The position numbers were made by a program, and so were the translations under genes. Source: Cyanophora paradoxa CCMP329 (taxonomy: Eukaryota > Plantae > Glaucophyta). From it: a DNA stretch of 64,000 bases. The stretch is taken from positions 62,001 through 126,000 of the forward strand of contig QPMI01000436.1 of the NCBI GenBank assembly GCA_004431415.1. Direction: 5' to 3'. Shown one piece after another: positions 1 to 42,647 of the stretch. Positions within the stretch are counted from its first letter, which is position 1, and the number at the start of each line of letters is the position of its first letter. The notes below the pieces were generated by a model. The model was not told the DNA's origin. It saw nothing but the letters and a program-made list of their open reading frames with translations, and made no database searches.

Positions 1-3000
1 AGATGCGTCGTCGCGGCCAGCGGTTCACGGAGGAGGACGTCATCGACTTCCTGAAGCGCATCACCATCATCCTGCTTCAGCTGCACTACCACGCCGAGAT
101 GCTTCACCGCGACATCAAACCGGAGAACATCATGGTCCTGGAGGGGCGAGGGGGCCGTCGGGAATATTTCCTCATTGACTTCGGCGTTGCATCCACGCCC
201 GAGCCGAATCGTTTGACGATGGCCGGGACAAAAGTGTACGCTCCCGACGAGCAGGTGTGAAGTATTCAGTCTATGTTCACGAGTGCTTATCATCATTGTT
301 AATTTTTTGATTTTTTATCTGCTGCGTATTCGTAGGCGAATGATGGCAAACCCGTCGACGCGAGCGACATCTTCAGCCTTGGCCTCACGGCAGTCGAGAT
401 GTTCTTGGGCGTGCTCCCAAACCGTGCTGACATGCACCACGCTCTCGACTCGCAAGAAGCCGTACCAACGTCGAGACTGCCCAAGCGTGTGCTGCGCCTC
501 AGGACGGGGCTCAGCCACAAGCTTCGCAGAATCCTGCACACGATGCTCATGCAGTCGCACCGACAGCGCTATCAGACGGCATTCGAACTCTGGCGGGATC
601 TGATGTTGACTTTTCCTGACGACAATCCGCTGGACGAAGGTGCTACGCTATATTTTTCGCTGCGTTTAAAGTCACTCGCAAGCTTAAGCGAGTGTGTGCT
701 GATTTGGGTTACCATGCAGACAAATGGGGCGACGCGGAGGAAGCCGTCAAGCGCTCCATCCACGTCGTCCGCAAGTACATAAGCCTGCTGGACAACCTCG
801 ACGAACAGCCCCCGCCCCGCTTCACGTACCCGGATGCAGACGAAGACGAGCTGGAGCCGACGGGCGACGGAAAGGAGCTGGATGCAGAGCCGACGACCGC
901 GGGCGACAGGCGGCCTGCAGGCCTTCCCGACTGGCCCGGCACAAATCTCCTCCCTCGTTCGCGGGATTCTACAAACTCCCTCGAGGCCGAGCTCATTTTA
1001 CCTGACGGCCCCGAACTCTGGGATCCTCAGGCCCTCGTGCACGTCGTCCGACTAGCCATCTACGAGGAAGTCAACAGCGCTGGCGCCAGCGTCGAGCTGC
1101 GAAAGCAGGTGAGGCATTCAAATAGGTTTCATGCGCAATTTCGTCATTGCAGTTGCCCCGCAGGTGCTGCGGACATCGCTGCGCGTCGGATCGGTGAAGA
1201 CGGGCTCCACCAAGATCCTTCTCAATCTGGACCTCGACTCGGCTACAGAGGAGGGGCCGATTCTTCAACGCATCAAATGTGCAATTCAGAGACTCGGCGT
1301 TCTGGAGTGGAAGGTGAAGAAGAAGCGAGCGGATGCTTGGGCAGGCTTTCTTCATGAGAAGCTGAACCAAAACGGAAAGTGTACGCATCACGTTGAAATC
1401 TCTTCCACATCCCGCTCAATTTCGAATTAACCGAGCAAGCACTGCAGCGATCAAGAAAAAGCTGCTCTCGTGGCTTGGCTGGGGAGATTCACACTGGATG
1501 CCCAAGGAAGCAGCGAAGAAGAACAGAGAGCTCCTTCACGCTGTCAAGTCAAAACGTGCACATGCTGCTTATTCTGGCAGTCATGATCGTTTTAAATCTT
1601 TTCCGCAGAGAAAGACGAACAGCACGCCCAGCCGAACAGCAGGGCAATCTACTTGTACGCCTCGCAGGCCAACTTCAAGGACATGGGCAGCTTTGATCAG
1701 CCAGATCGAGATGAGGGCATCGACAAGGCCTGCAGTGAGATCTCCTCTCTTCTCGGCTCTGACAGCGGCGTGGCGGATTCGGACTTCGTTCACTTCTCGG
1801 AGATCATCTCCCTGGACAACGCGACCACGGCTTGGGGCTCCGGATCCGCCGCTGGCGCTGCCAGTTCAGCGAGGCCTGTCGTCGGCCCCGCCCTTGCCAT
1901 CGCGATCGTCAAGGCGCTCGGCGGCTGGCAGGGCACCATCGCTGACTCGCTCGGGAATCAAGTGGCCGAGCTCGTCGAGAGCATCGGCGAAATCCTTCAA
2001 CAGCAGGTGCCTATTCAATTCAGATTCTCAATTCCACTGGAAATGTTCCACTGGAAATGACACAGGCCGGGTCGATCAGATCAGGGAAGATGGGCAAGTT
2101 CCGGCCACTGTTTTCGAATGTGTGAAGGAAGTTTTAGTGGCGGATTCATCTTCCAGTCACGACTGGCGGCGACGCGTCCAGTGGCACAACTTGTCGCAGT
2201 CAGGAGCTCAGCGGCTTCGTCTGAGCAGTGGGGAGTCTGCAGCCAACTGCTTCGCTGTGGAGATCGGCGACCTCGACCAACTAATTTCTTCAGATTTCTC
2301 TCGAAACAATGCCGTCCGCGGTGCTTTGGATTCGTTCATTGAAAATTGTTGTCCAATTCTAATCTTCAAATACGGAAAGATGTCCTGTCGAAAGCCAAGG
2401 AAGCACGCGTGACGCTCTGGATCCTCGGTTTGCCTCTAGAGGGCACGGTCAACCTTGTTCTCCGTGTCAGCCACCCCGACGATAAGGCGGCCATTCGACG
2501 ATGCATCCAGGACAAGACGGGTGCATAGCAACAATTTTGTTTCGACGCTCAAGGCCAACAGTTGACACAACGGCTTGCAGATCTGCAGGAGGAAGAAATC
2601 CAGCCCGGAAATGAAGAGGGCGGCGAAGCAGGCGCAGCGGACGCTCGCCCGTATTTGGTTGTTGCAGAATTCAGCAATGAGAAATTCTCCTTCAACTACA
2701 TGGCGAGTCTCTGTTCATATTATCGACTCTGCTGTTTTCTTATCTCGCGATCGCCTGCTGCAGTTGTCAGACGTTGTGTACGATTGGAACAAACTTGTGG
2801 AAGTCGAGGCGTTGGATCGCGATATGAAAGTGAACATCGTCAAAATCAAGGTAGCTGCGCCCAATCTGGTAGAAAGACCTGCAGCTACAATTTTAACTGC
2901 TTATTCAGGGAACCCGAAAGAGCGACAAGAGCGTTGTTCTACTGTACTCGAGCGAGGCTGACAAGAAGGCCATTCTGGATCCACCAAGAAGTCTCATTGA

Positions 3001-6000
3001 GCTGGATGCCGAAGACCGAAATGGAGAGTTCGTTGTTACGCTCCACGTCGACGGCACCCTCAAGCTGCCCGAAGCAGTCTCCGCGATCAAAGCTGCCGAG
3101 ATCCCGCCTGCCTTCTCGGTCTTCCCATCTCAGCGTCAAGTGGCCCGCACCATCCTCGAGCGCGCGACGTACATCCTCACGGGCACGACGGACGTGCATG
3201 AGCTCTCGAAGAAGTTCCGCGACTTCCATTTCATCGTCCTGGTGCGCCGCGGTCGCGAGGCATCGAAATCGCTTCTAAATTTGAAGTCACTAACATTAAC
3301 ATTAACATTAACTTCGCTTTCCTAGTCGCCAATATAACATTATCCTCGCTTTTCTCAGTCTGAAGTCACCCCCCAGATGCCCCGGTACACGTCGCTGCAG
3401 AATCAGACGCGGAACCGCATGGTGCAGGCGGGGCTCGTAAGCGCCGAAGACGCCGAGAATCAAGTTTTTATGTTTATGGACAGTCAGGCCTGCAAATCCG
3501 CTTACGCAGCATTCAAGAAGCGCGGTTTGCAACTTCGATCGTTTCGTTTTCGCACTTCGAATGCTGACATCTCGTTTTTCGCAGCGATTGAAGAGCCCGA
3601 CACGCTTTGCGTCCTTGTGGCAGACGAGTGCCATTGGGGTCTGCTCGTTCTCTACCTCTTTTCCCGTGCATGCCTTGAGCTGAGCGCTTGTTTCAGGAGT
3701 TGGTCGCGGATCTGCACATGACAGCTTCGTCAACGATTCCAACGTGGACAGCGAATACCCAGACGCAAGGTCATCGCTTTCAAAGCCCAATTGTACACAA
3801 TTTGGCATGATGCTCTCCTTGTATGCAGATTGACTGATTGCGAGAACGTGCTCGTGCTGCTCGTGAGTGCAACACCGGGCAACGTCCTCACCAAGAAGAG
3901 TCGCATCCCTGAGAAGTACCGATTGAAAGAGGAGACCATCGCGCGAGTCCTGCAGAACGAAGCGGACAGCGGTGTGACCGAGACTTTGGAAGCTAAAACC
4001 GTTGTCGAGGTGGTGAAGCACGCCAAGGATGGCGTGCATGTCCGCCGTGACGGGGATTCATCCAACTCTACGCTGCTTCTTGAATTCGCAGCCCTCAAGG
4101 ATGTTCCCGAGGTCCACGTTGTCAAATGGGACCAAGTAATGCAAGAGGTGATCATGCATACGGCCAAGATCGGAATTATCCAAAGCCTTATGATATCTGC
4201 AGATGAACGAGGTTGAGGCTGCAGCGTCACGTACCAGCGGCGATCCAATACCATCGGTGGTATCCAACGAGGCAGCGGCAGTCCGATACAATCGCGTCAC
4301 AGAATTTGTCGAGAGCGTGGCAACGGCGAGCCCCGAGCGACGTGACATCCAGGACGACCCATTCTTCATTGCCCTCCTTACCAAGTACCACCGAACACTT
4401 GGTCACAAGTGCCAGTCAAAAGCAGAGCGCAAGAAGTATTGCGACACGGACATTCTTGCTGCAGACTACGCTTTCTCATCTCTTTTCCGTCGCCACTTCA
4501 TCAACTGCGCTCCTAGGCCTGCACCTCGGCCTGCCTCCGCCGAATTCGACGCAGCCGCCTCCGCTCTCTATAAACGTGAACACACATTGCTATATTTCTA
4601 GAAGTCCCGCGAGTCCTGGGTCTGGAAGAGTACTCATTGAAGCTACAGATTTCTGGGAGATCTTTAAGGGCGACACCAGCTTGGAACTTGTTGGAAACGT
4701 CTATCTTAGCTTCATCAGCAAGGAGGGTGCGTGGTATAGCGCTTGCTCTGATATAGCGCTTGCTTTCTTCTTGCATGCTCTGACTGAATTGTCCACGAAT
4801 GCAGCGCTCAAGCTTTCTCTCGCGGGAGCGAAAGAGAATCAAGCCGAAACGTTAACAAGCAACGAAGCTTCTGTCGATGAATTCAGCGTGTCCCTCCTGA
4901 AGCCGTATCTTGACAAGAAGCTGCGGGTGTTTCAGTCGCCGTCGAAGGTCAAAGGCTGCCGCCTGGTGCCCGAACAGCCCTTTTTGTACACACAGACGGA
5001 CTGGAGTGAGTTGTTGTTGTCTGCCACCCGCGCCACGACGCTTGAGCTCGAGCTGATATGACGCCTCATCAGTTCTTGAAGATCTTCTCAACGTCCAAAA
5101 TAACGTCGGACGTATGAAGGTGCTTTCAGTGTTGTGCCCTATATCTAGATCTTCTCAAAGTACGTTTTGAATGTTTTCCATCGCCTAATTTTCATTACAA
5201 GATGGTTCGGGCCGACGACAACAAGACTGCAATGAGGTTCAAGGATGTTCTCATGGCGACGCGCCGCATCTGCCGTTGGACATCGGCCTTCGAGATCATC
5301 GCAGATTTCGGCAACGCTGAGCTGGAGGATGCCATCACGGCGCCATTCCAGCGGCGCTACATAAAGCGGCGCGGGGCTGCAGCGGGCGAGAGCCGGCTCA
5401 CCTACGAGGACCTTGAGTCCATGCCATGCATCCTCATCCTGTGTGAAAAGGGCCGGTGAGTGCGAACGCTGTTGCTTCGGGTCATCTTTTTGAATTTCAC
5501 ACATTTGCTCACGTACGTGTGCTGCAGGATGGGCGACACGTTCCCTCGCTCGTTCAACACGATGGATCTGCGCTGCCGTCACGGCGAGAACACTGGCGCG
5601 TGCGTCACCAATGTCTCTGCGTAGTAGCAGACACGCATACGTACCAAGCAATCGTGCAGGATGACAAGCTTTATCCAAGAAATTGGGCGCATGTGCCGAT
5701 ATGCGCCAGGCAACTCTCCTCTTCGGCCCTACGCCGTCGTCGGCAAGAAACTCTTCAAGCAGATTCAGGTGGCCATCGAGCGCCACGACAAGCAGCGGGC
5801 GCGAGACCCGAACGCACCGAAGCACGTGATCGACTACCTTCGGCTAAAGGAGTTCGACAGCTAGTACGCAAACTACTTGACCTCATTCCAGGCCGTCCTC
5901 GCCTTACGTTGCCCTCGCAGCGCCAAGGGGTCTGCCCGCACGTATTCCAGGACGCTGAACCCGCGCACCGACCTGGAACCTCTGAAGAGCTACGACGTCG

Positions 6001-9000
6001 CCATGCAGAAGCACCACACCCGCCGGCTCCTCCTTGAGGCCGAGCCGCAGGTTGGCAATTACTCAATATATTATATTATTTATCTGGTTACTGAGGGTTC
6101 ACTCCAGATTGGCAAGACGGGCACCTACAGCTACTTCTTGCTCCTTGTACGCGAGTTTGTGACGCGGCCTCTCATCCAGCCTCCCGTGCCGCTCTCTGGC
6201 CAAGCTACGGCCAGCTACAAGCAGCCGGTCTGACCGCCTCGATTATGAGCTCCATGCTTTTTTTCCTGAACGGCCTTCACAGCCTCAAGACTGGAAACGT
6301 GCCGACGTGTTTGCCCACCGTGCAAGGCTGCTGCAGAACAGCACCACGCTTGGTGCCTACGTGAAGGAGATCGTGGAGGAGCTCGGACCACGGGAGATTC
6401 TCCCGGCTGGCGCCTTTGAATCTTTGAAAGCTCTCTATGTGCGTCCCATGTTTTCATATTGTTGGATTCCGATGAATCCAACTTCAGGATGCTTGCGCAT
6501 CGGATGCGTCAACGGGGACTGTGGTGAGGGGAGGGCGCTGTCTCAACGTGGAGAAGCTGAGGGAACTCCTCGATTTTGACAAGAGGCTCAACCTTGCTTC
6601 CATTGATCTCTCTGACATGAAGGTGCATTACTCTACATTTAGATGAAAGTCTTTTACAAAGTTTCACGATCACACTTTGCAGGCCGCGGAGAAAACGTTG
6701 CGTGAGCCTGTGGAGCTGGCCAAGCGCGATGCAGCTTCATCGAAGCAGCGACCTCCCTGCTTGCTCACAGCTGTGGCGGTGGAAATTGCACCTGGGGCTA
6801 AAGCCACTTCAAAGCCCAACAGCACGCGCTACGTGCTTGCACCAGAGCTTCTGAAGCGCATCGGAGTGCCTGACGACTGCATCGGCCAAGTTACGATCAG
6901 CATCCCGTCGAATTCTGTCGGCGGTCCAAGCTTAAGTTTGAAACTCAACTCGAGCGGCCAAGTAACTCGCATTGGACCCGCTTCAGAATCTGTGAGTGGT
7001 GGCAGCGGCGGCAGCGACGGGGGCGGCGGCGGTAGTGGAGGCAGCGGCGGTGGCGACGGTGATGGCAGCGGAGACAGCGGCGGCGGCGGCGGCGGCGGCC
7101 ACCGCCGCTTCGCTTTCGTTGTCTGTGGAGACAATCCTGTCGAGGCGCGCCTTGGCGTCGCTGGTGATCATGACATTCCCGCCAACCTGGTGAGGCTTGC
7201 AGTTTTATCGACGTGAAAAGTCGAATTGATTGCGAGCTCCTTTCACAGCTGGCCGTCGTGTGTAAGCCACACTTCGAAGCGTATGCAAGCATCTGGGGCG
7301 GCCGTGTCGCGATTCTGAGCATTCCGGAGAGACTGAAGCTTCCAGACTGGAAATCAGAAGCAAGGGCTCCGAGCGGTCCCGTTGGATTTGCTCGCCTCTT
7401 TGTGCTGGTGAATTGTTAACGTTGTTCTATCGGCAAGCTTCTTTCAACTAACACCACCGGGCTGCAGCTGTTCTCGTGTGAATTGAAGCTGGATTTCATC
7501 TGGCTTTTCGACGACTCGGTTGCGGGCTGCCGCGAGAAGGTGCTGGTTTTCCTTACTCTTGCCATGTCCACGCTGCCACGCGCTCACATGAGATGCAGCC
7601 GCTGGGCGAGGCGATGCGAGACGTCGAGAAGCGCGTGGTCGCCGCGGGCTCGTCTGGCCCTGCCGTGGCCGGATTCAGCCATGAGGCGCCAAGTGCTTTC
7701 CGCGCCTCCGAGGATCACGACTTTTCGATCACCCCATACGTCTATGGGGCATTCTTCTTGAACGTGGATCTCTTGAATGAAAAGCGTTGGCTGTATCCCG
7801 CTAAGAGGTGTTTCAAATTCGAACTCTTCTTTGTTGGAACTTTCTGACCATGCAGCGTCGCCGCAGGCACTGGAGCGAGGTTGACTTCCACTTCCGATGC
7901 CAAGCGCAAGGCTCCTCTTCTCTGCTCGTGTGGCGCTTCGAGTCTCTCCATATCGTCATCGCGCTTCGCGAGCGCGTGTCGCTCTTCTCCCAGCCGACGA
8001 TGTGCCGCTGGACCCCAGGCGCCGGCTGCGTGTTGACGTCCGGTGGGCCCGGGGCCGAGCCTCCGGATCATTCGCAGCTTGACATCCTGATTCCGTGGCT
8101 TTCCGACCGGGTGCCCATTCGCCGCTGTCGCATTGCTTTGAGCGCTGCTAGACTCCACGCTTCGGACAGGTCGGGAGCGGGCTTTTGCTTGGCTGCCAGT
8201 ACAACGACCGCGAAGTTCAGGCTTCGGAGTTTGTCAAGAGTTTCGCTGCCGCTGCTGGAAGTAAGGGGATGGTACGCTTCCGTTTGCTCTTCCTGTTTCC
8301 TCGAGCCTAACTTGTGCATCGGCATGCAGGAGCTCAAGTGGAAATCCCACAACGAGGTGGAGGTGGAGGACGTCAGGCGAATTTCAACAGGAACAAGCTG
8401 CACGGGCGTCGTTTTCTTCCCGAACCCGATCTCGTGGTTCTCTGTCACAAGCGGGGTCCCCATTTGGATGTGGTGCGGCAAGTAGCTATAGAGCAAACAC
8501 TAGCGATGACTGCAGGCGATTTGCAAGCCGCTTCGTCCTGTACTTATCCACATCTGTTTCCAATCGGGCGCAGGGATGCCGTGAAATCCCCAACACTCAT
8601 TGTGGTGGTCAGTCATCATTGGTTTTGCTTTCTTTGTGCTGCTGGCTTAGAGAACATTCAGGTCCCACGTAACGCGTGGATGGGAGAGACGGTCAGGCAA
8701 GAGGTGATCGAGAATGAAGCCGAAAGCGTTGCCGGACGCATCGCCGGCTTCCGGCTCGCGGGCATCTGGTCCTCTGTGCCGGCAGACGGCTCGGGCGCCG
8801 CAGCACCGTCGTCATCATTGTCGGATCCGGCACGGGCTGTGTGGATTGCGCTCGAATTCACGACCCGAGCCGCGTCTCCGCCGCCGCCACCGCCGCCTCC
8901 TCCCCCTCCACCGCCGCCGCCTCCTCCCCCCCCACCGCCGGCACCACCACTCCCTCCAAAACGCGGAGCGAATCGCACACCGTGCGCGATGGCTGTAACT

Positions 9001-10319
9001 GGCAAGGCTCTTCAAAATCCACTTACAATCAACGTGCAGGACTGGTCAAGTGGATTCGACGCAGCCAGCTGCAGCAAGTGGAGAGGCTGGCAAGGCAGGC
9101 TCAGGCTCAAGCCGCAAACGATCGGCCGCGGCCTCCGGGGCCGAGGGAACACCGGACTCTTCTACGAAGAGGACGAGGAAACAGGAGTACCCAGAGAGTG
9201 CGAAGAAGAAAGACCGGGAAACGGCTGGGGAGGATTTCGATGCGGAAGCCCAGGTTCAGGTTGGTTTCGAGAAGTTTGTTGAGCAGCACAAGACGAAACT
9301 CTCGGAAGCGGATCGGCAAGGTACGAGCTTTTATTGAGCTTTTGTTACGTCTCTGCTACGTCAGCCCCTCAGCCCCGGCCCATTCCCCAGGCAAGGATGA
9401 CAAGGTGATTCTCGACGAGGCTCGACAAGCCTGGGAATCTTTGGATGGCGAAACGCGTTTTGAAGTGCGCTGTGTTTTCGCACGTGAAACTAGCAAAATT
9501 GATGCATTCCCAGCACGTCATGAGCGTCGTTGAAACGTTACAACGTCATTTGCATGGGCATAAGAATTGGAACATGGACAGATATTTCGTAGAAGAGAAG
9601 AAGAAAGTTGAACCAAACGTTCCTATTTGTGAGTCTCCAACGCAACGTTAACGACTGTCTTAATTCGCATTGATTTCCATCGGCTCGCAGCTGAATTGAA
9701 AGCTCGTTGGGTGGCACTTCCAGAGGAAGAGAAGCAGGCATTGGCATCTCTTCTTCTCCTTCTTCTAGAAACGATTTCGTGGCTGCGGCCGATATCCTGC
9801 GTTTCCAGGGCTTACCCGCAGCGTGCGCAGAAGTACAAGGATTCGAGAAGAGAGGACGGGAATCGCCTCAAAGCTCGCCAGAGACTCGTCCGGGATGTAA
9901 GTGGCCGCCACTCGCCGGTTCCCATCTTCCCATCGTACGCGTGTATATACTAGGCCCTGCAGGCGCTCGGACTGCCGAAGACAGTGCCAAGCAAGAAGGC
10001 AGAAGCAGCCTCCGGCGGTGGCGAGCCTGAGGAAGCTGGCAGCGCCAAGAAGCTCAAGCAGGGGCGGAAGGCTGCAGGCGCGAAGAAGCAGAAAACGACC
10101 GGGTCCGGAGAGGCAGAGTCCGTGGTTGCAAAGGTATATATTCCCCAAGCCCTCAGCTTAAGCTTGTCACTTTTGATTCGACACACGCTGATAAGATGGC
10201 ATGATTTGGTGCAGAAGTCAGAAGGCTCGGAGAAGGCCGCGAGCAAGGCGGCGGATGAGGAGGGAGATGACGACATCAGCCGCGAGGGCGACGACAAAGA
10301 CAGCGAAAATGACGATTAA
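1..10319 (+). CDS. GREB1: Multi-exon protein kinase - GREB1-like fusion (kinase + circularly permuted SF2 helicase + TAGT glycosyltransferase + GREB1 C-terminal domain + HMG-box-like tail); 5' end lies outside the window
   Basis: Hand-splicing gives one phase-compatible frame from the kinase (HRDIKPEN, DFG, GTKVYAPDEQ|ANDG..SDIFSLG; introns 255-335, ~640-719, ~1109-1163 etc.) to the helicase. GREB1-like motifs follow: FPSQRQVARTILE..FHFIVLV, LCVLVADECHWG, LLVSATP, ILILCEKGRMGDTFP, FIQEIGR, RRLLLEAEPQ|IGKTGTY, IWLFDDS, AFFLNVDL, SEVDFHFRC. Stop TAA at 10317-10319. The similarity to GREB1 is recalled from family knowledge, not from a search. Confidence 0.85.
3..620 (+). other. Ser/Thr protein kinase domain, C-lobe (subdomains VIa-XI)
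   Basis: HRDIKPENIMV, LIDFG, MAGTKVYAPDEQ, SDIFSLGLTAVEMFLG, RQRYQTA. Confidence 0.9.
3110..6170 (+). other. Circularly permuted SF2 helicase/ATPase (GREB1 type)
   Basis: Motif order: II DECH (~3623), III SAT (~3866), V-like EKGRMGDTFP (~5445-5545), VI QEIGR (~5675), then Walker A AEPQIGKT (~6040-6120). Confidence 0.85.
7100..7960 (+). other. TET-associated glycosyltransferase (TAGT, GT-A fold) domain
   Basis: AVVCKPHFEAYASIW, VGFARLFV, IWLFDDS (acidic motif at 7510-7515), PLGEAMRDVE, VYGAFFLNVDL, WSEVDFHFRCQAQG. These are colinear with the GREB1/JGT TAGT motifs as recalled. Confidence 0.8.
9250..9870 (+). other. Two degenerate HMG-box-like segments followed by a Lys/acidic tail
   Basis: GFEKFVEQHKTKL..ILDEARQAWESLDGETRFE and LKARWVALPEEEK|AYPQRAQKYK resemble the HMG-box W-x-x-L-x-x-E-E-K-x-x-Y helix. 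Confidence 0.45.
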
Positions 10320-11448
10320 GACCGTTTCCAGAATGTCTATTTGCAATTTGTATTGATATTTCAGCGATTGATCATGATCATGAAGTGTTATAATTGAATT
10401 ATGCACAGGCGGAACTGATCATGATATCGATGTTAACGTTTATTTTACTCGAGGGCAATTTATGGCGATGGCATCGCTTGATGCAATGAACATGCTGTCC
10501 GTTGTCCCGTTGTCCTTGCTTTTCCGTTGCCCCGAGCCACAACATGTACGATCGCGACTTGTAGCCTCCAGCCATATATATAGCCGGGTACGATCATGAA
10601 TAGAGCTACTAGCAATTTGATTTCTGAGTAAACAGTGAGAGCGATTCTAGATTCCAGTGAACTTTGGAACAGAAGTACCAGATTTCGCATGCGCACTCAG
10701 TGACTCTGATATACATCGATAATCCGCTTCAAGGCTTGTCAGCCACTTTCTGATCAAGATCATGATATCGATCAGTCGCCCCACTCCCACGCGCGCATGC
10801 CATTACGTATGTGCCTTGCGGGACCTGCACTGCGGCAGCTGTAGGCTATCCATGCTAGTTATATAGGCACCTGCAGCTGCCCGCCGAGGGCACACTAGCT
10901 AGTGGGCGCCAGGCCATATATATATCTATATATAGCTAGCTGCGGCCCAGTGGGTGTTCATGCAACCGATCATGATCATGCATGTGGCCATGGGTCTATA
11001 GCTATAGCTATAGCTACGTCAACCCCGCCCACACACCCCTCCCCCGGCCCCCTCCCCCTCCTCCTCCCTCCCGCCCCCCCCCCTCCCCCTCCTCCCCCTC
11101 CGCCCCCGCCCCCCCTTCCCCCCCCCCCCCCCTGCCCCGCCCCCTCCCCTTCCCAAGGGTCGAAGGGCCCCGCCGCCCCGTATCCGGGGCCATCGCGCGC
11201 GCTCGGGCTCGGCCGCGGGACGTCGACAGCGCAGCTGCAGCCGCATGCCTATGCATGCGTAGATGAGGTCGACATCGACGCAGAACGTTCGCTCCCTTCA
11301 CACCGCCGCTACCGTTTCCGTACAGGGACACAGATTACCACAAACATGAATTCGAATAGGAAATTAAAGGAGACTGACGTCGACCCTGTGAAAGCAGCCG
11401 GTGCGGTCGAAGCCGCGCCAAGCAGCCTATCGCTATTTATAGCTAGCG

Positions 11449-28100: not shown

Positions 28101-31038
28101 GAGATCGACGCGGAGGCGGCGGAGGGGCGGCTGGCGGAGGCGGAGGACGGGCGAGCGCGGCGGGGCGGGCGGGGCGGGTGCGCGCCGGCCTCGCGGCGCT
28201 GGAGGCGGTCCTGGCCCGGCGCGACGCGGCCCGGCTCGGCGCGGCGCTGCGGGCGTGGGCCGGCGCGGCGCGGCGCGCGCGCGGGGCGCGCCGGCGGGCG
28301 GCGGCGCTGCAGGGGCGGTGGCGGGAGCGGCGGGCGCGCGAGGCGGTGCGCGAGTGGCGCGGGGAGGCGGCGCGGAGCCGCGCGGCGCGGGCCGAGGCGG
28401 CGCTCGAGGCGGAGCGGGCGGCGCGGGCGGCGGCGGAGGCGGCGGCGGCCGAGGCGCGCGAGGGCGGCGCCGCGCTTCGCGCCTGCCTGTCGGCGTCCGA
28501 GCGGGCGGCGGCGGCGGCGGCCGCGGAGGGGCGCGGGGCGGCGCGAGGGCGCGGGCGGCGGCGGCGCGGGCGATGGGCGCGCGCCTCGCGCGGCGATCCG
28601 CGGCTCGCGCCTTCGACGGGTGGCGCCGGGAGGCCCGCCGCCAGCGCGCCCTCGCGCGGTGCGAGGCCCATCTCATCTCATCCGAGGCTCCTCTTTCTTA
28701 CTAGCACGCTTGCTTATCTATCGTACTTTCTAACTTCTTACTAGTACACTTGCAGCTAACTTTATAACTATATTCTTACTAGCACGCTTGCTTATCGTAG
28801 GGCCTCCGAGGTCGTCGCGAGGCGGCGGGCGGCTTCGCTCGCCGGCGCCGCGCTCCGCGCGTGGCGCGGGCCGCGCTCGAGCTGCGCGCGGGGCGCGTGG
28901 CGGAGGCGGCGGCGGCGGCGGCGGAGCGCGCGGAGCGGGCGGAGCGGGAGGAGGCGGCCATCGCGGGGAGCGTCGCCCGGCAGGTGCCCTCCAGCGCTCT
29001 GCTTTAAGCTTAGCCTTTAGTTGACCAGTGCTTTGAGCTTAAGTTAAGCAGCTTTAGCAAACCTTTGACCCCCTCTCACCCCGCTCTTAGCTAAGACTTT
29101 GATTAAAAGCGGCGGGCGGCGCCCCCCCGCCCAGCGCTCTGCTCGCCGCCTTACATAAACCTTTCGAACCATAAACCATAGGCTCTAGATCTCCACCCTC
29201 TCTCTTATAGCTAGAAGCTTTAACGTCGACTCTAAACTTTGAGCTAACCTCCTTCACGCTTCTTAAAAGCTTCGCCTTTGATTTCAACCTTTCCTCACCC
29301 TCCTCGCCCCTGCAGGTGGAGAGCGTGGCGGAGGGCGTGCGCGGCCTCCTCGACTCAGACACGCGCTTCCGCGACGCCGCGGCCGCCCGCCTCGCCGCGC
29401 GCTCGGCCCTCCGGCAGGTGCATACATACATAGACTTCAAGGTGCTTTAGCCTTAGCCTTTGATTGACCGGTGCTTGAAGGTCAAGGCGGCCATGGCGGC
29501 GTGGCGGGGGTGGGCGGCCGGGCGCCGCCGGGCGCGGGCCCTGGCCGCCCTCGCCGCGCGGACCCTCGCCGCGCGGCGGGCGCGGGGCGCCTTCGCCGAG
29601 TGGTGCGCCTCGGCCCGGCGCCAGCGGCTCCTCCGGGTACGCTGTTACTTTTTCTTCTATTTTTCGAAATTTCAAACTTTTTTCCAGGTGGAGGAGGCGG
29701 TGGGGCGGCTGGAGGGGGTACTGTCCGAGCGCGCCGCCGCCGTGCGTCCAATCGCTTCTTTTGTGATTTTGATCTCTTTTGAGTTCGTTGGCAGAGGGAG
29801 GCGGCGGTGCGGGCGAGGGCGGCGGCGGCGCTCTGCGGGCGGGCGGCGCGGGGCGCCTGCGGGCGGCCCTCGGGGCGTGGCGCGAGGAGGCGGGGCGGGC
29901 GGCGGGGGCGCGGCGGCGGCTGCGGGCAGCCGGCGAGCGGCGGGCGCGGCGGCTCGCGGCCGCCGCTCTTCAGCGGTGGCGCGAGCGCTGCCGCGAGGCC
30001 CGAGAGGCCAGACTGGGTACCCCCCCTGCGCTCTTCCCCTCCCCCTTCCCTCCCTTCTCCTCGCCTCCCATCTAACTGCTTCTTCCCAGCGGCCGCGGCG
30101 GGGCGGCTCGCGGCCGAGCAGGTCCGTTGCCTTTTGCTGCCTGGATCCGGGTCTAGAGCTGCCTTTCTCGCCTTCTCCTTCATCTTCTCACCTAGCGGGG
30201 CCCGGCCGAGCAGGAGCTGGGGGCCGAGTCGCTGCGGCAGGCGGAGGAGGGCCGGCTCGCCGCCGAGCGGCGGGCGGCGCTGCTCGAGGAGCTCCTCGCG
30301 GAGGAGCGCGCGCAGCTCGCCGCCGCCCGCGGGCGCCTCCTCGACTCCGAGGCGAGCGCGCCCGTACCCCCGAAACTAAACCTCCCCCCCCCCCCACCCT
30401 TTCCCCCCCCCCCCAACCCCTCAAAACTCTTCTGGACCTTAAAAGCAAGGCTGCGCCTTCTTATATAACTACGTAACTATCGTCTATTTAAAACGTTAAC
30501 GCGCTTCCAATTACCGGCCGTATCCTTCTGATCAAAGCGGCCGTACCTCTTCTGGAGCCTAAAGAGCGATCTTTCGCCTTTTTATCGTTTTATGAGCTTC
30601 TAATCTCCTAATTGATACAAGCGGGCGCCTGCTCGCCTGCGTGGCGAGCGCGCCCGTACCCCCCACCCCGCTTCTCTAAATCTCCTTCTGATCGCGTGAG
30701 AGCAGAAGGAGGCGGCGGGGGCGCTGAGGCGGGAGGCGGAGCGCATGGAGCGCCTGGAGGGCGCGTTGCTGCGCCCCGAGGCCGGCGCCGGCGCTGTAGC
30801 CCGCCCTCGTTCAGTGGGACCGGGCCTCGATCGCGACCCTCGATCTGGCCATGGCGCCGGCGCCCGGTCCCGCCCTAGGCCTCTTGGACCGGGCCCGGAA
30901 TCCGACCCCCTGGGATTCGAGCTCGGGCTCGATGCGCCCGCCAGCACTAGCACCCTGAGGCTCGACCCGTTCGAGCTCCCGTTCGACTCCGACCGCGACC
31001 CCCTGCTCGCTCTGCTTGGTATACGTAGGCAGAAGTGA
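25127..31038 (+). CDS. Coiled-coil protein with many Sfi1-like (centrin-binding) Trp repeats; several frameshifts in G/C runs
   Basis: Repeated (A/L)F/L-x-x-W-R units: AAFAAWAG, QSFAAWRS, ALREWRW, AAFAAWRG, ALRAWAG, AFDGWRR, AAMAAWRG, GAFAEWCA, ALGAWRE, ALQRWRE; long Ala/Arg/Glu helix. Confidence 0.7.
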
Positions 31039-31169
31039 AAGTCACCGAGTGCTCAACTTATAATTACGCGAGCAATCTCGATGCCACATGTACACAATGA
31101 CGATGACGCGAGCAATATTAATCTCGATGCCACACAATGTCACAATGTCCCGCCCTCTAGATAGATCTG

Positions 31170-31385
31170 AGCGTGGGCCCTGACCACAGGGCCTTGATTC
31201 GACCCCGCGGGCCGGCCCTCAGGGCCTTGGGATTCGAGTTCGAGCAGAGGCTGGTTGCACTCATCAGCACCCGCCCCCTGATCATGAGCTTCGACTCCGT
31301 CAGGCTCCTGCTAGGCCTGCCACCCGATCCGGATCCCGAGTTCCCGCTGGGCCTGCCCTCGGATCGCGACCCCCTTCGCACATAG
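31170..31385 (+). repeat. Diverged local copy of the last exon of the Sfi1-like gene
   Basis: Shared blocks (GGGATTCGAG, CAGCACCC, CGCGACCCCCT) with 30813-31010. Confidence 0.45.
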
Positions 31386-31781
31386 AGAATGGAGCTAGTC
31401 CAGAATGCACAGGGATATTGCTATTGCAATCGTCAACATTACAATTGCAAGCTAGGACCATAATGCCGCGATAATGAAATTCAATCGATATCGCCAGTGG
31501 TGAGATTCGCGATCATGCCGGGGCATCTACGGCTCAGCAGCCGGCGAAATATGGAAGTAAGTGTGGCGCGATCATCATCATTTCCATCGAGCTCCGAGGC
31601 TCGGGATCAATTCGAAAATGAAACTTGACGTTGCCTCCAAGCTTGGGACGAAGCCAGCCAAGGTCCTGCTCATATGCATATGCATTATTTTTCTTTCTAA
31701 AACCTTTTTAATTGTAAAGCTTGCGAAATGAGTAATATTAATATTCTAAGCTAAAGGCCGAACGAACCAGGAAGGGGGTGA

Positions 31782-33000
31782 TCATGACCTCATCAATGGA
31801 GGAGACATCGGCGGCGATTCGGCGCGAATAGCGAGTTTGAATTGAACGTCCTCTGGGCGTGCGACTCGGGCACCTTGCCGCAGATCTAGAACTTGGAATT
31901 CGAAGCTTTTCAGAACAGACCCCGGCGCCTTGGACGGCATTCTTATCGAAATGAGGCATTGGTACATGTAAGCCGCTGAGATTAAATCGGCGATCGCCTC
32001 CTGTTCGTCCGCTGCAATTTCGTGACTCAGTGACGACCATGAATATCTATAGCTAAGTATAAATTATAATTGCTTTGAGCTAGAATTCGAAACAATTCAA
32101 CCGTGCGAACCATGCTCGGTGTAGTACACTGACACAGCCACGGAGAAACGCTTCAGCATGTGATGCGACTGGTTGCGCATAGCGCGCAGAGCTTCAGCCA
32201 ACGCTTTCAAAGTTGCCGAACAATTTTCATTTCCATGGAAAAGCTCTTTTCAGAGACAAATTCAATGTATACGTACATGCATATGTTGGGGTGAATCCTC
32301 CGATTCATCGAGGTGTCCACCAGCGCCCGAACTCCAGCGGGAGTTACATTGTTCACGGTAGCGCTTAAATACGAATTCGAATTTGGAATCTGAGCAGATC
32401 CGAGAGTCTAATGGAATTTTTATAAAATCGATATGAGGGTGCACCGTCGCGCGGCACACTCCCACAACATTTTCAAGGGACTCCAATTGCATGAGAGCCG
32501 GAATTGTTTCGTCCGTAAGCTGAATTGGGCTGTCCACGGATTAATTTGTGATTGATCAGGAGGGAAGGGCCGGGCAGCCCAATATTTAAAGCTCAAGGCA
32601 CCAGCCTTCGGAAGCAAGAACACGGAGAGAGTCCCTGACAGCCCCAGCCGCAAGCGCTTGCAGGCCCTCGCTGATGTCCGTGTCGCCTTCGGCCCGGATC
32701 TCTTCGAGATGAAGAGAAGACAAAGCGCCGAGCACGTCGCGAACGTCGAAATCCGATGCGAAAACGATGCGCGCGCTTGAGGGCTGTGCAACACTCGGCG
32801 ACGACCCGCGCCATGGCGGCGTCCAATTGGAGGTCCGGGAGCGCCAGCGACTGAAGATCAAGGAAAGGCTTCATCATTTCAAAAGCGGCTCGCAGCTTTG
32901 AAGCGTCCATTTTGTTGGATAGAAGACCGCCTGTCACTGAAATGCCCCAAAGGACGCAGGGCCGAGAAAGTTGCAAGGGGGGAAGGGGGCCCCCTTGCTT
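31782..33000 (-). pseudogene. Disrupted LRR-like gene, probably of the same expanded F-box/LRR family
   Basis: Fragments PFLDLQSLALPDLQLDAAMARVVAECCTALKR, VLGALSSLHLEEIRAE..LQALAAGAVRDSLRVL, IQLTDETIPALMQLESLENVVG in shifting frames with stops. Confidence 0.5.
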
Positions 33001-33211
33001 CCCGTTCCCTCGCTTCAGCCAAAAGTTTTCTATGAGGCCGTTTTCGAGGGCCAGCTTGCAACGAAATTGTCGGTTATTCGCGATCCGATTGGCTCGGTGA
33101 ACGGGTCAGCTCTCGACTTTCGAGCGTCGAATATATATATTCGAGGGGAAAAAGTGGTTTTCGATCGCGAGGGGAAAACTAACTTCTCTCTAACTCCGGT
33201 CTTCGAATTCC

Positions 33212-33377
33212 TTGCGCGGTTCTGCATGGAACCAGTTCTCCCTAGCTGTCTCCTCTAGATTTCGGCTTCCTCGCAGTGCGTCGCGTACGCCTTGCTCTTC
33301 GTTGCGCGGTTCTGCATGGAACCACTTCTCTCTACCTGTCAACGTCTCCTCTAGATTTCCGCTTCGTCGCACTGCGC
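33212..33377. repeat. Tandem duplication, period 90 bp, about 2 copies
   Basis: TTGCGCGGTTCTGCATGGAACCA...TCTCCTCTAGATTTC at 33212 and 33302. Confidence 0.8.
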
Positions 33378-34474
33378 AGCCTACGCCGCAGGGTACCCGT
33401 GCCGCGTGGACTAATATTCATTGCATCCAGCTTAAGCTTGCACCGCAGCGAGCACGCGCCGCTGCCTGCAGCTGAGCACGCTGCCGGCACTCGTGCTTGA
33501 GCTTGCACGGGAAAACCGGTTCCGCCGCTGCGCATGCCGCCGCCGCCAGTGCCTATAGCTAGCTGCGGCTGGGCCGCTGATCATGATCGTAGCCGAGGAC
33601 AGGCTTTCGAGACCGTGCTCTCTCGCTGCGCTCGGGACGCCGCCGAATTCGAGCCTATATTGCAGAACCGCGTGCGGAGGTGCCCGCAGCCGAGCACGCC
33701 GGACGGGCCGGGCGCTCTTGTTGCGTTTGGCACCTGGCAAGCAGACCAGTTCGCGCACTGCGCACGGCGCGCCGGTCGACGCCGCTTGCAATTGTCTGCT
33801 CATTCAGGTTGAGGCTGCTGTCAGCGTCGGCGCTCCGACGTTAACGTTCGGCGTCCCGCGTTGCACCCGCCGCGTGCGCTTGACACCCGGCCAGCTGCCT
33901 AGGAGTCCTTGACAGTGCGCTGAATCTGGCCTTTCATTCACACTTTTCTTTATTCGGTTAGATCGCAGCGTCTGCATATCAGCCCTTTTCTATTCTTTTC
34001 AATCATATATAATATCTTTACTACTTCAACCTGCCGCGCGCGCTGGGCCGGGGTCGAACTACATCTGCCCCGTGCATGTTCGTGCCACTACTACTCTTTC
34101 ATTAGATCCCGATTCCCCCCTTGCACCCCCGGCGCGCCAAACGCGGCCGGGCCCCTAGTAGAGCAGCAAGAGACCCGCAAAAGAACGCGAAATACTGCGA
34201 ATTCGGCGGATTGTAGGAGCTCAGCGGCTATAGGTAGTAACGGAAAGATCGAGGGACAAACGCTTCAACGAGTCACAGCTGCTGATGCTGCACAGCAGGT
34301 TGGTCTCTGCACCGAAAAGCCTTGAAGATCGGGCATCTCCTCATCCACACACACTTGCGCTTGCGCATTTTCATGCAGCTTCAGTTTTCCGGCATCATGA
34401 TCAATAAGCTCCGCGACGCCTTCGAAGTCCGATGGATTCGCTGATTTCACGCCGATCTGCGTCCATTCGACGCT

Positions 34475-34700
34475 CACTAGTAAAAAGGGGGTAGCAACTG
34501 ACCTATAACCGGGCCAAAACCGGGCAAAAGTCGGGCATATATATGATCGGACCTATTGTGCGGGCTAAAGCGCTTTTGATCGGACCTAAAACGAGTTTGA
34601 TCGGACCTATAGCTAGCTATAGCCCGGGGCCCTATACGATCGGACCTATAGCCTGCTATTGCCCGGCGTTGCCCGCGGCCTGGGCCCGGGCAATAAGCTG
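34475..34700 (+). mobile_element. Probable CACTA (EnSpm) element terminus with subterminal repeats
   Basis: Starts CACTAGTAAAAAGGGGG, followed by four GATCGGACCTA copies (~34545-34650); partner end not found. Confidence 0.55.
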
Positions 34701-34842
34701 AGAGCTAGCCAGAGGCTCCAGAGCCCGATCGCGAGTCATAACCATGATCAGAGATTGAATTCAGTTCAAAGGTGTACCAGCACATCTGCCACATCATGGC
34801 ATGTACATATGATATGCACCGATCGCATGAAATCCCCTAGGC

Positions 34843-37800
34843 CTAAGCGCAGCTGCAGGCGACAAAGTCGTCCGCGAGATTGATCGCGAGCTGTAGATCT
34901 GCAACAAGACCCGCCTCGAGCTCGTCGACATCGGCCTCGATCTCGAGTGTGGCCTCCTCCGCCTCGATCGCCAGCTCCTGCGCATGCCGCAGTTGCGCTA
35001 AATTGATAGAGATAGGAACGCAGCCTCGAACCTGCATAGTGCCATCAAGGTGGAGGCCTGGAGGCTTCACTCGTGTGCAGGAGGGGTATTCCATGAGCTC
35101 GCATCCATCCACTGTGCATTTTTCCTTAGTCTGCAGCGGTGGCAAACCCGCATTAGCACTTCGAGCAGGCGCGGCACTGCGCCGCGGCGTGTCCGCATGC
35201 GCACGCGTACGTATATACGCGTGCATACGCGTACGTATAAGTATGGCACGTGCACGCACCAAGGTGTAGTAGGAGAATTCATCCCGGCAACTGCACAGGC
35301 GGCATTAAACCCGTAAGATCAGAGTTTCGAATCACGCGCAATATATATATATATAAGTATACATATGTGCAGTGCGCAGACCCTGCTTTCATCATTGGTA
35401 ACATGCTGTCAGTCATGCAATCCTCCATCGATAAACACTTAAAGGTCCGCTCGGCTATTTTACTCTTGCACTCAACGTCGCTGTACTCCTCGAACTTGTA
35501 GTTCAGAAACTCGCTGCAACCTCTTGATTAGACTCGCCAAATTAAAGTCATATATCCCTCGCTTTCGGCGGGCACACCAGGGCATACAGGCGGTCCCCTT
35601 GATCGCGCCCGCGCCGCCCAGCCAGGTCGTCGGCGAGATCGAGACGCTTTTGTATGGGATGCCCTTCGTGAGCTGGATGTTCTTAAGATCCCAGCGAAGT
35701 CCGTCGCTCTCGTTTGGCGGGCGCTGGTATTCGTACTTGTCGAACGTCGTTTGGCAGCCGGCGACGATTGCCTTCGACAGCTGGTCATCGATGTTGTTGG
35801 CCTCGCCGCCGTGGATCCGGGTACTTTTGCCGGGTGCGTCTGCCCTTTCTTGTGTGTAAATTTTCACCAGAGAAATGAGTTCTTTCGCTTGACTGAGCGT
35901 CAGGTCCAGCCCGAACTTATTCAGTCCCTGCGTAAATTTTTCGTACTGCGTCCCGATTATAATTAATATTGTGATCATAGCCGAACAACGTCGTCAATTT
36001 GAGAAGAATTCAAAGCGGCGCACTACCGGCCGGAAGTAACGGTTGCGAGCCAAGTCCTCGCAGCGCTGATTACGAAACTCCGTTGACTCGAGGGGCTCGA
36101 CGAGCTCTTGCAATTCGGCGAGTAATGGGAGCGGGTACGTTGATATCGAGTGGCCGTTGTTCAGAAGAGTTGCAATCTTGGCCGCCATCTCGGACCTGGG
36201 CGTCTTGGACACATGTTGCTCCTCCAAGCAATTAAGATAGGGAAATGCCGTTACAGTGGCCACCGCCGGGCTGAGGAGCCGGAGTGCACGTTATCTCGAC
36301 GCTTACGGAATGAATATGTAGGGGAACATATAATATATATACTTATATAAAAATTTACGGAACCTCAAAAAGTCTTTACCATCTCGAGCATTCCACGGTG
36401 GTGCCTCCGTTGGCGCCGCTCTTGACGGCGTAGAAGTAAGAGTTCGGCACGTCGCAGGCGTCATCATAGGAGATCCGAGGATCGTCCTTCGCGAGGGCTC
36501 CGGGGTAGTACTTCACATCCACTACTCTCGAGTCTGAGCAGGGCGTCGACGCGTTGTCATACGTGTATAAAGCCGTCAACTCTGGACTGTGGGAACCCCA
36601 ACGCCCTCTTTGCCTCAGGCTTGATTTCGTCCGATCGCGATCATGATCAGAGGGTACACGAGCGCGCGCACCAGCGAGCGCAGGTGGCGGTCGCAGGGGC
36701 TCCTTTGCCGCTCTGCACAACAATGCTGTAGTGCGCTGCATTCGATTTGCCGCAGGCTTCAACGATCTGCGCACATAGAAATATTAGTATTGATAGTGAA
36801 TTCGAATTTCGAAGGACGATTTGCAGAGATCTAGACGCGGTCGGAAATTAAAGCGAGAAAACAGCCAACATTCTGCTGCAGTCCGTTGTCTTCAAAGACT
36901 TGGATGGACGATGCGCGGTCATTCATTCTGCGCAGTGGGGATTGGCCGCATGGCCATGGGGCAGCACAATTTTAAAACTCGAAATAGATGCGAATGAAAC
37001 CCACGCAGGCTCACACAGAATTAACCAGCGAATAGCACCGGCTGACGTTTGTGTTGTTTGCTATCATCTGAATGTCGCCCTTGGAGCCTTTATCAGCTGC
37101 GTGCATTCCCAATCATGATCAGACGTCGACATTCCGCTTCCGCTTCAGCTCGAGGCCGTACCAAACAGATGGACCCTTGTTTGCGGCTGCAATGCAAATC
37201 GATGTCGATGGTAGTCAGATTGTAAATAATTAATGGATTCATTAAAGCCGGTATATCATAGTTTATATAATGTTTTAAACTCGTGAACATGATGGATTGA
37301 CGTTGGCTTCTAATTACGTGAACGCGCGCGTGAGCGTGCAGACCTTCAGGCAGACCGACGAAACCGCATCATTCATGCCGTACTTATATCCGGAGTCCCA
37401 AGGAGTTCCGGAGTAAAAGTCAAATTTTTGAATGGTTTTCAGATTGTACTGTCCGGCCGAGCTCGAGGGCTCCAAAACCCCGGACTGTTCGCCAATAGTT
37501 GACGTCGTCCCGTCCTTCTGAAGTTCGGCTCTCGGAGGTGCACATGCGCTCTGCGCATGCGTGCGCGTGAGCTGCGTAATTCTGGACGCGTATAATTTTG
37601 AGGCGCACTTCTGAGAAAAGCTTGGCGCCATAGCCATGCACATGGCCACCGTTGTCCTTCCTGCATGGAATTCGCAAGGTCGGCCATATGTACATGCATG
37701 CATATATGTGTACATGGCCAAGAGCTGCATGCAGAGTTCACGTGTATTCACCCGTTGGACATACATGTCGATCGAGTTCCTTGGGAAGTTGATCTGGCCA

Positions 37801-38307
37801 TGGTTTGCGCGGTTAAGAATCGCGCGCGAAAAATGTGCGCATGCGGGCCGGGGCCAGGGCGGCCGCCCGCGGGGACATGTATGTATGCACCTATCGACAA
37901 GCTGCCATTCGTATATCTTCGTCAGAGCAGCCTCTCCGCTGCAATCGGCCGTGTTGAAAGTTTGAATTTCAGACAATTCGGGGCTGCGCAACCGTTGAAT
38001 TCATTATATATCATCATTGCAAATCATGGCCATATGCATGGAATGTCAAGGCCCCGGCCGATCGCGAGGATTGCACATTCTGAACGAACCAAACTGTGCA
38101 GCTCGTCTCTGTCCCGGAGGCCTTTGTTTTCGCGGAGCTGTAATGCGAAACTCCGGGCGTCAAACACACCTCCCGCACGTCATTCTCATCGGCGTAACGA
38201 GGCACAGCCAGGTCGACGACTGCCGTCCCGCTGGCCGCCGCCGAGCACGCCTCCGCTGTCGACCACCCTCTGACCGTCGACTCGATCTTCGATCCAGTTG
38301 CGCCCAT
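34843..38307 (-). CDS. Multi-exon protein: MGxxxS start, Cys-containing repeats, beta/gamma-crystallin domain, acidic C-terminal tail
   Basis: Spliced ..YKYGMNDAVSSVCLK|PQTRVHLF|ADKGSKGDIQMIANNTNVSRCYSLVNSV|MNDRASSIQVF.. (37440-36870) with phase-compatible GT..AG introns; start MGATGSK at 38307; ends ..LADDFVACSCA*. Confidence 0.7.
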
Positions 38308-38429
38308 TGCGCGCAGCGAACGACTCGGCGTCGAGTCGGCGTCGACTCGGCGATCGGATGGGCCCGGGGCGTCCTTGCTATAGCCTAGTAGCTATTAGGC
38401 CTTCCGTCAGGCTTCCGAAGCTCGCGGTT

Positions 38430-38790
38430 TGCCTAGTAACCGTTACGTATTACGTATACCGTATACGGCGTACCGTATACGGCGTATACGGTATACCGTA
38501 TACGTAGGTTAACGTAGGTTACGTATACGTACTACGGCCCCAGTCTACGGGCCAGTCTACGGCGCCCCCCGGCGTAGCTGTTCGGTAGCCTCACCGTGGC
38601 ACTACTACGTATACCTGCCGCACTAGTACTGGGTCAGGCAGACTCATCAGGCGATCACACTGGTTACTAGTCTGGTTACTACTAGGCTAGTTACTCTGGT
38701 AGAACTAGCCTAGTAGCCTAGTACTAGCTACAGCCTAGTACTAGTAGTAGCCTCTAGTAGGCTACTAGTAGCATCCGATCACCGAATCTT
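38430..38790. repeat. Low-complexity palindromic microsatellite tract
   Basis: Iterated CGTATACG / TACGTA / CTAGTAG units. Confidence 0.7.
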
Positions 38791-38867
38791 ACCGATGCCC
38801 GGCCACGCGTTCGCCGCAGCCACGGTGCCACGGTGGCCCGATATCGATATCGATACGCTACGAGATA

Positions 38868-40823: not shown

Positions 40824-41225
40824 GCGCCGGGCCGCCGGCATATTCGCCGGCGGCATTAATATTGTCGGTTGATTGCAATTTATTAATATTGCAAAAGTAC
40901 TATCATAGTCGATTCATAGAGTCATAATCCTCACAGGACCTCACTAGTTCTGATTAATATTCCTCAGTGATTGCACTCCGGGACCGATCGCGAGTCCGGG
41001 ACCCCGGGGCCCGGGTTAGTGTTTAAGTTGCGCGCACACGGCAGCACACCTCATGATCAGTCAATGGAGTCAATAGTAATCAAGTCACTCCGGGAAAGAG
41101 GTAGTGTTTTATTTGGTTTTTTGCCCGGGCCGGGAAGGAGCTAGCATGCAGTGCCTACTACCACGGACCGGGAAATTTCGGCGGGAATTCAGGGCCTGTA
41201 CAGGGCCTATATATATATATAGCTA

Positions 41226-41740
41226 CAGGCTCATCGAACCGAATAGTATCGAACCCATTCGATCGAACCCGGCGAGTTTCGAACCAATCGAACCCGGTCA
41301 CCCGATCGAATCATTCGAATGTGGGGGGTACGCCCACGAGAGGCCTGTCTTTGCAGCGAAAGAAGCCATCAAGAGTCTTCTTGGACGTGACAAAATCGCA
41401 TATTAGGCAAACAGTATCATTGCTGAACCAATTCTACTCAGTGTGACTGCATTTTCGCGCTGCGGTTTGCAGACGACACAGGTTACAAGTACCCCCCTGG
41501 AAGTATGTCGGTCACTTACGAGACGTATACAGCGCTTAAGAACGTGTCTTTTGCTATCTTTGATGTTTTATGCTTCGTTATCTCTTGCTTATGCTGTTTT
41601 GTATCGCGTTTACGCTCTGTTTCGGCCACCAAGGGTGCCTGACGTACCCCCCTACCGGGTATCGAAACCATTCGATCGAATACGCAGACCGATCGAACCG
41701 AATCGAACGAACCCGACCCTACATTCGATACTCACCCCTA
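41226..41740. mobile_element. MITE-like remnant (hAT-like) with TCGAAC subterminal repeats
   Basis: TCGAAC(C)-rich blocks at both ends, internal inverted GGGGGGTACG / CGTACCCCCC, right end ..CCCCTA; TIR/TSD not clean. Confidence 0.4.
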
Positions 41741-42563: not shown

Positions 42564-42647
42564 ATAAAATCTGGCCCTAGCTCCCTTCGGCGAAATAACA
42601 GATCGTGCAAATTTAGGCTTGTATGAGGCCGTAATTGTGGGGGGTAG
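42564..42647. repeat. Diverged direct copy of 38979-39085 (TE terminal sequence)
   Basis: ATAAAA..TGGCCCT..TCCCTT.GGCGAAATA..GATCGTG..AGGCTTGTAT..GGGGGGTA shared. Confidence 0.6.

Follow-up and report, generated by a model that had tools for sequence, protein, structure and literature searches.

A GREB1-family protein of Cyanophora paradoxa that joins a kinase domain, a permuted SF2 helicase and a diverged TAGT glycosyltransferase

A 64,000-nucleotide stretch of DNA from the glaucophyte Cyanophora paradoxa CCMP329 (contig QPMI01000436.1, positions 62,001 to 126,000; the window in what follows) opens with a locus in which a kinase, a helicase and a glycosyltransferase appear one after the other. 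Do these domains belong to one gene, and what could such a protein do? The locus is one gene of the GREB1 family, and the whole protein is approximately 2660 amino acids long. Our reading of its function, drawn from sequence comparison and held at somewhat less than even confidence, is that this member of the GREB1 family may be an ATPase that depends on nucleic acid and carries, besides a diverged glycosyltransferase, a kinase domain that is specific to the lineage and probably regulatory. The TAGT domain and the GREB1 architecture were reportedly defined by Iyer et al. in 2013. The features of the gene are as follows.

1..10319, plus strand: single intron-rich gene with 42 exons in the window and its stop codon at 10317-10319
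3..639 (exons 3-254 and 336-639), plus strand: C-lobe part of a Hanks-type Ser/Thr kinase (Pfam Pkinase)
720..3097, plus strand: linker of approximately 640 amino acids with no detectable relatives
3098..6170, plus strand: circularly permuted SF2 helicase/ATPase (PF20692, Pfam cpSF2-GREB1)
7001..7099, plus strand: Gly/Ser-rich spacer (GGC repeat)
7249..7930, plus strand: TAGT glycosyltransferase of GT-A fold (family profile, ESM Atlas and fold match)
7931..8877, plus strand: post-TAGT region of approximately 220 amino acids, earlier called GREB1 C-terminal-like, with no match by any tool
8878..8955, plus strand: poly-Pro linker, in which three RNA contigs end under the simplest exon model
9263..9896, plus strand: two candidate HMG-like helical units in five short exons, the second of which needs a GC-AG intron at 9738-9830
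9963..10319, plus strand: Lys-rich, then acidic low-complexity tail

The gene model that starts at position 3 encodes 2517 amino acids, and its 41 introns (median 60 nucleotides, all GT-AG or GC-AG) leave about 2500 codons open throughout. RNA contigs were compared over 1-6000, and splicing past 6050 is modelled, guided by EukProt P0001. The latter is an independent gene model of 2442 amino acids that adds approximately 144 residues upstream; its splicing between 3 and 6050 is identical, and it has the same stop codon. Removal of the 22 introns between 3 and 6050, which have GT-AG or GC-AG borders, gives 1515 codons without a stop. Fifteen of the 22 were recovered as joints in three RNA-like sequencing runs from two studies and not in the DNA run, and four were read from the boundaries of contig pieces. 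The introns at 1109-1163, 1381-1447 and 1556-1608 were set by a 329-nucleotide gap in two contigs, and P0001 agrees with them. Among the GC-AG introns, 2703-2763 is supported by RNA and 9738-9830 is modelled. Seven RNA-like runs contain 0.48-0.63 of the sequence words of 1-6000, as expected of spliced transcripts. In ten further same-species RNA-like runs (X13-X22) the words of the gene are almost completely missing, compared with about half present in those seven; condition-dependent expression, a strain difference or the library type are candidate explanations.

A single RNA contig links the two ends of the proposed kinase-helicase fusion. Record 3 of run X2 (6439 nucleotides) shows the same offset, 219, at each of nine checkpoints, starts in the last ~33 nucleotides of the first kinase exon, and crosses the kinase C-lobe, the linker and the helicase in one piece. 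Three long RNA contigs continue past 5454 for 2520, 2523 and 2558 spliced bases, and under the simplest 3' model they end at 8893, 8896 and 8931. Because all of these ends fall within the poly-Pro repeat, it is very likely that this transcript includes the TAGT domain and the post-TAGT region as well. Two P0001 introns, near 6923-6985 and 8677-8803, were disfavoured, since all three contig ends reach the poly-Pro repeat without them. One transcript and one polypeptide for the kinase, the permuted SF2 helicase (cpSF2) and the TAGT domain are supported, and the original prediction, which had joined the kinase in frame to the helicase on a single transcript, holds on both counts. The thought that two adjacent genes, one for a kinase and one GREB1-like, were merged by annotation or by short-read assembly seems extremely improbable. 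Short-read contigs can bridge adjacent transcripts and are no strict proof of one molecule, overlapping untranslated regions are common in Cyanophora (PMC6704402), and two contigs of run X1 meet near 2230-2250 with the kinase side at lower depth. However, the X1 contigs abut within an exon and the X2 record crosses the whole region. The frame is kept at every junction from 3 to 6050, with no stop codon and no space for an intergenic stretch in which a second gene could begin.

Of the three enzyme domains, only the helicase has a predicted active site that is fully intact. GREB1 domains had been expected between 3110 and 8870, and a profile match was indeed obtained there, as P0001 scored 311 bits (2e-92) on PF20692. 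In an exon-by-exon Pfam scan, seven exons from 3041 to 6053 matched cpSF2-GREB1 in profile order. Walker B (DECH, 3623-3634) is followed by motif III (SATP, near 3865), GRMGDTF (5451-5543), motif VI (QEIGR, 5676-5690) and finally Walker A (PQIGKT, 6045-6119, split by the intron at 6051-6107). The order of Walker B, then motif VI, then Walker A is the permutation of the family. Motifs I, II, III, V and VI are intact, and I, II, V and VI agree with 88-92 fetched relatives. By these motifs the helicase looks active, like its invertebrate and protist relatives. The position of the protein in a tree of the helicase core was unreliable (88/59 support with a Logan sequence).

A TAGT domain after the helicase, also foreseen from the DNA, was located at approximately 7249-7930. 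A profile built from 23 relatives matched it at 5e-19, with three exons matched separately, ESM Atlas placed it with phage TAGT clusters at 0.96, and its AlphaFold model matches nucleotide-diphospho-sugar transferase folds, which are GT-A-like. The Pfam TAGT score was 19.6, below the cut-off of 27.5, and a tblastn search of the phage collection returned no match for the domain. The motifs are GFARLF (7384-7401), FDDS (7507-7518), FFLNV (7752-7766) and WSEVDF (7871-7888). In phage DNA glycosyltransferases and the kinetoplastid base-J glucosyltransferase (JGT), the active-site signature is R...DDD...EDY/F (10.1101/2023.12.21.572611). The Cyanophora domain shares the GT-A fold and the R and DD motifs with JGT and the phage TET-associated GT-A DNA glycosyltransferases. 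Those enzymes stand alone, carry EDY/F and have a linked dioxygenase, whereas the third motif is SEV here and the domain lies in a multidomain chain. In comparison with the family, the Arg is kept, as in 154 of 154 relatives, while DDS replaces DDN (154/155), Leu replaces Gln (151/154), and SE replaces the acceptor-side catalytic ED (134/135). It is a genuine TAGT domain whose acceptor-side motif is altered, and activity cannot be assumed. Since the ED motif is altered, the specificity may have been retuned or the activity reduced.

For the kinase, the original description of the C-lobe as catalytically complete stands, and it does not extend to the modelled N-terminus. Pkinase matched 3-257 at 4e-11 and 336-638 at 8e-4 in the exon-by-exon scan, with HRDIKPEN at 105-128, DFG at 177-185 and YAPDE at 237-251. 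The hinge and the alphaC helix are encoded ahead of the window, and alphaC, including its Glu, is known from P0001. The alphaC Glu, HRD, the catalytic-loop Lys and Asn, DFG and an APE-like motif are all kept. Residues 1-145 of P0001 contain Lys at 6, 8, 107 and 141 only and no GxGxxG, so the model has neither a Gly-loop nor the beta-3 Lys. The sequence ahead of alphaC is Ser/Pro-rich and free of lysine between residues 9 and 106; the kinase profile match begins at alphaC, and the beta-3 Lys column is aligned to V73. Beyond the upstream edge of the window, one RNA contig extends 314 nucleotides and the DNA contig 316. The near-equal lengths are a hint, and nothing stronger, that the upstream stretch is intronless and the P0001 N-terminus correct. 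On these features the domain is more likely a regulatory or docking module (a pseudokinase) than a normal kinase.

The kinase appears to be of bacterial type, possibly from a cyanobacterial donor. In a homologue search limited to 8000 candidates of 418-1330 amino acids, the named proteins among the best 120 kinase matches were all bacterial, mostly cyanobacterial. Among PDB matches, bacterial Stk1/PknB tied with human TNIK. An endosymbiont origin is therefore a lead and not a result, given the limited candidate set and this tie between bacterial and eukaryotic structures. Bacterial Hanks-type kinases (Pkn2/PknB-like, especially cyanobacterial) share with the Cyanophora domain the alphaC Glu, HRDIKPEN, DFG, GT..YAP.EQ, SD.FSLG and RYQTA. 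In contrast to them, it lacks both the Gly-loop and the beta-3 Lys in the P0001 model, is split by spliceosomal introns, and is fused to a eukaryotic helicase-glycosyltransferase.

How unusual is this architecture? Full-length relatives with a cpSF2 helicase numbered 87, including many paralogues from corals and proteins of Owenia, Planoprotostelium, Mallomonas and others, and most of them also carry a TAGT domain, with ankyrin, OTU, ZZ or WD40 as extras. A kinase motif was found in none of the 87, and a kinase profile had no match in 50 related loci, many of which lie on short contigs. The fusion, whose novelty had been suggested earlier, is a new architecture in a known family and unique among the relatives sampled. 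As the family freely swaps ankyrin, OTU, ZZ and WD40 domains, the kinase is one more accessory and not a new system. Corals, Owenia, Planoprotostelium and Mallomonas have cpSF2-TAGT proteins (PF20692 plus PF20691) that share the order of permuted SF2, spacer and TAGT with the Cyanophora protein and are approximately 33% identical to it in the core. These proteins also keep Walker A and B intact and have variable accessories. They differ in that they have no kinase and carry DDN and ED in TAGT, whereas the Cyanophora protein has a kinase, DDS and SE. Human GREB1 and GREB1L likewise have a permuted SF2 followed by a TAGT-type glycosyltransferase domain (PMC7968844). Human GREB1 begins with a Zn-binding domain and has an inactive helicase (PMC7968844), in contrast to the N-terminal kinase and intact helicase motifs seen here. 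The published set of lineages with GREB1-like proteins comprises choanoflagellates, ichthyosporeans, mycetozoans, cryptomonads, haptophytes, heterokonts and Naegleria, with no mention of glaucophytes or of kinase fusions (PMC7968844).

Several relatives are of interest in themselves. The cpSF2-TAGT(-ankyrin/OTU) paralogues of stony corals (P0008-P0086, L001-L015) are numerous and divergent, and they are often encoded by single open reading frames of 2100-2400 amino acids. Several of these GREB1-like genes lie together on a contig, in a lineage-specific expansion that resembles those of immune genes. In the 2887-residue P0005 (Planoprotostelium fungivorum PRP75493.1) the whole cpSF2-TAGT unit is tandemly duplicated. 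One assembly, JAESGV01, holds five cpSF2 paralogues (L005, L006, L008, L011 and L016), which reach 48% identity to the Cyanophora helicase in the best segment and show no TAGT in the flanks examined. P0093 (3027 amino acids) carries WD40 propellers N-terminal to cpSF2-TAGT, where the Cyanophora protein has its kinase. No cpSF2 relative was found in 2.9 million viral contigs, and a viral origin is unsupported. A search of bacterial genomes gave one cpSF2 match, a gene of cpSF2-TAGT-ankyrin type in a metagenome-assembled genome; this gene is built like those of corals and probably represents contamination from a eukaryote.

In the mechanism that we tentatively propose, the permuted SF2 ATPase would be the working core and would bind nucleic acid, probably DNA or chromatin. 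ATP hydrolysis could then drive translocation or a conformational switch, through which the ATPase would bring the GT-A (TAGT) module to its target. That module keeps the R and DD that bind nucleotide sugar and metal, and it would have a retuned specificity or reduced activity. A bacterial-type Ser/Thr kinase domain would have been gained N-terminally, in the manner of the WD40, OTU, ZZ and ankyrin accessories of relatives. Dependence on nucleic acid is what SF2 biology would lead one to expect, and we further infer a role in chromatin or against selfish DNA, as well as pseudokinase status and a cyanobacterial donor for the kinase. Some points weigh against this proposal. The N-lobe is known only from gene model P0001, in DNA outside the window, and an exon may have been missed. 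The conservation of the alphaC Glu, HRD, the catalytic-loop Lys/Asn and DFG suggests selection on catalysis. The bacterial origin of the kinase rests on the ranking of matches without a eukaryotic outgroup, and the D-to-E change at the presumed catalytic base of TAGT could be tolerated.

If instead all three enzymes were active, which we consider unlikely, the helicase would track along DNA, the TAGT would add sugar to bases oxidised by TET/JBP, and the kinase would signal or autoregulate; this reading includes a mark akin to base J on transposons or viral insertions. By its features the TAGT lies nearest to phage TAGT clusters, and JGT and phage GT-A relatives glycosylate DNA (10.1101/2023.12.21.572611). 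Abundant repressive CpG methylation lies on Cyanophora repeats (PMC12344493), and the Lys-rich tail and the HMG-like motifs, the latter unconfirmed, would fit a nuclear DNA-binder. Against these stand the change from ED to SE in TAGT, a modelled N-lobe without the ATP-binding Lys and the Gly-loop, and the finding of no TET/JBP gene tied to the locus of the fusion gene, in addition to the unconfirmed HMG units. A non-exhaustive literature search brought up no description of a glycosylated base in Cyanophora. The proposal that the protein both glycosylates and phosphorylates is weaker than first put forward: the TAGT R/DD and the kinase C-lobe are kept, while the acceptor-side motif and the ATP-binding elements of the P0001 N-lobe are not. 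A decidedly improbable variant is that the upstream N-lobe is intact and SE marks a new specificity. The protein would then be an ATP-driven, DNA-scanning glycosyltransferase with its own cyanobacteria-derived kinase, and it would glycosylate TET-oxidised transposon or viral DNA. If true, this would place a base-J-like mark in Archaeplastida, in a glaucophyte nucleus.

The acceptor could also be protein. Human GREB1 O-GlcNAcylates ER-alpha (PMC7968844), and by analogy the Cyanophora protein would be a protein O-glycosyltransferase whose kinase couples Ser/Thr phosphorylation to glycosylation of the same substrates, as a kinase and a glycosyltransferase on one chain would be expected to share Ser/Thr acceptors. 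We rate this as quite unlikely. The reported in vitro activity of GREB1 is low and not donor-specific (PMC7968844), and the same kinase and TAGT motif losses apply. Moreover, the human helicase is described as inactive (PMC7968844) and that of Cyanophora is intact, which points to a job on nucleic acid. A rather improbable further reading is that of a lineage-specific chimera in a low-GC island, in which the ATPase alone is being maintained, with the kinase and TAGT as passengers in decay. The gene region has 51-61% GC compared with ~68% in the flanks, no orthologue with the same architecture was found in the 87 relatives and 50 loci, several invariant TAGT residues are altered, the kinase N-lobe may be truncated, and the gene's words are almost absent from many same-species runs. 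However, approximately 2500 codons have stayed open across 41 introns, the gene is transcribed and accurately spliced in runs of two studies, and all catalytic residues of the kinase C-lobe are kept.

The tentative picture of an ATPase core with a probably regulatory kinase bears on a wider question, namely the role of GREB1-like proteins outside vertebrates, which could be DNA glycosylation, as in phage and kinetoplastid relatives, or protein glycosylation, as for human GREB1. Cyanophora offers a usable test case, being a culturable alga with a published methylome, intact ATPase motifs and a transcribed gene. The locus adds to the GREB1-like family a kinase domain and a lineage not listed for it, and it may exemplify how a signalling domain of endosymbiont type is grafted onto a chromatin-type protein of the host. 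Two things limit its value, namely the altered catalytic motifs and its being a single-lineage fusion in a family that often swaps accessories.

The linker between the kinase and the helicase had no match in Pfam, NCBIfam, PDB sequences, plasmids or ESM Atlas, and neither the linker nor the tail has a counterpart among the cpSF2-TAGT relatives. A single-sequence structure model suggests two small alpha/beta domains of similar predicted layout (approximately 1004-1331 and 2240-2600), in which a GS/GT turn between two predicted strands is seen twice. The model is poor, with a mean predicted local distance difference test (pLDDT) score of 45, and its matches to KH-II/OsmC-like folds reached Z values of at most 6.9, with a root-mean-square deviation of 3.2 over 78 residues. 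A TRADD-N adaptor, which would have an RRM-like fold with Ser at the beta2-beta3 turn, is unsupported, as the model is of low confidence and TRADD-N is absent from the fold matches listed.

The C-terminal part is less well defined. The GREB1 C-terminal-like domain of the original prediction was not recovered: the GREB1 C-terminal domain had no Pfam match at E<=10 in the post-TAGT exons or in P0001:2110-2270, and the region has no match to cpSF2-TAGT relatives and a pLDDT of ~35. A profile search with the TAGT and C-terminal segments gave a single protein, of coral type, and did not retrieve vertebrate GREB1. The region may bear a loose likeness to the human GREB1 C-terminus. The predicted poly-Pro linker is present at 8878-8955. 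The HMG-like helices fared less well and amount to a resemblance at the level of a motif, since exon-by-exon searches gave no profile match for these exons. An HMG helix-3 motif, W..L...EK, lies at 9708 in a plausible in-frame model (~0.1 expected by chance in 11 kb), and P0001 skips most of 9263-9896.

With respect to the genomic setting, the published GC content of the Cyanophora genome is 67.6%, with short and numerous introns (PMC6704402). Over 1-11000 the GC content is 50-61%, with flanks at ~68%, and the introns of the fusion gene average 48%. Blocks of low GC (~48-61%) occur at 1-11000 and at 31000-44000 in a contig of ~68% GC. Diverged tandem arrays were also found at 39764-40403, 60467-60884 and 33208-33387, with periods of 149, 127 and 96 bp, respectively.

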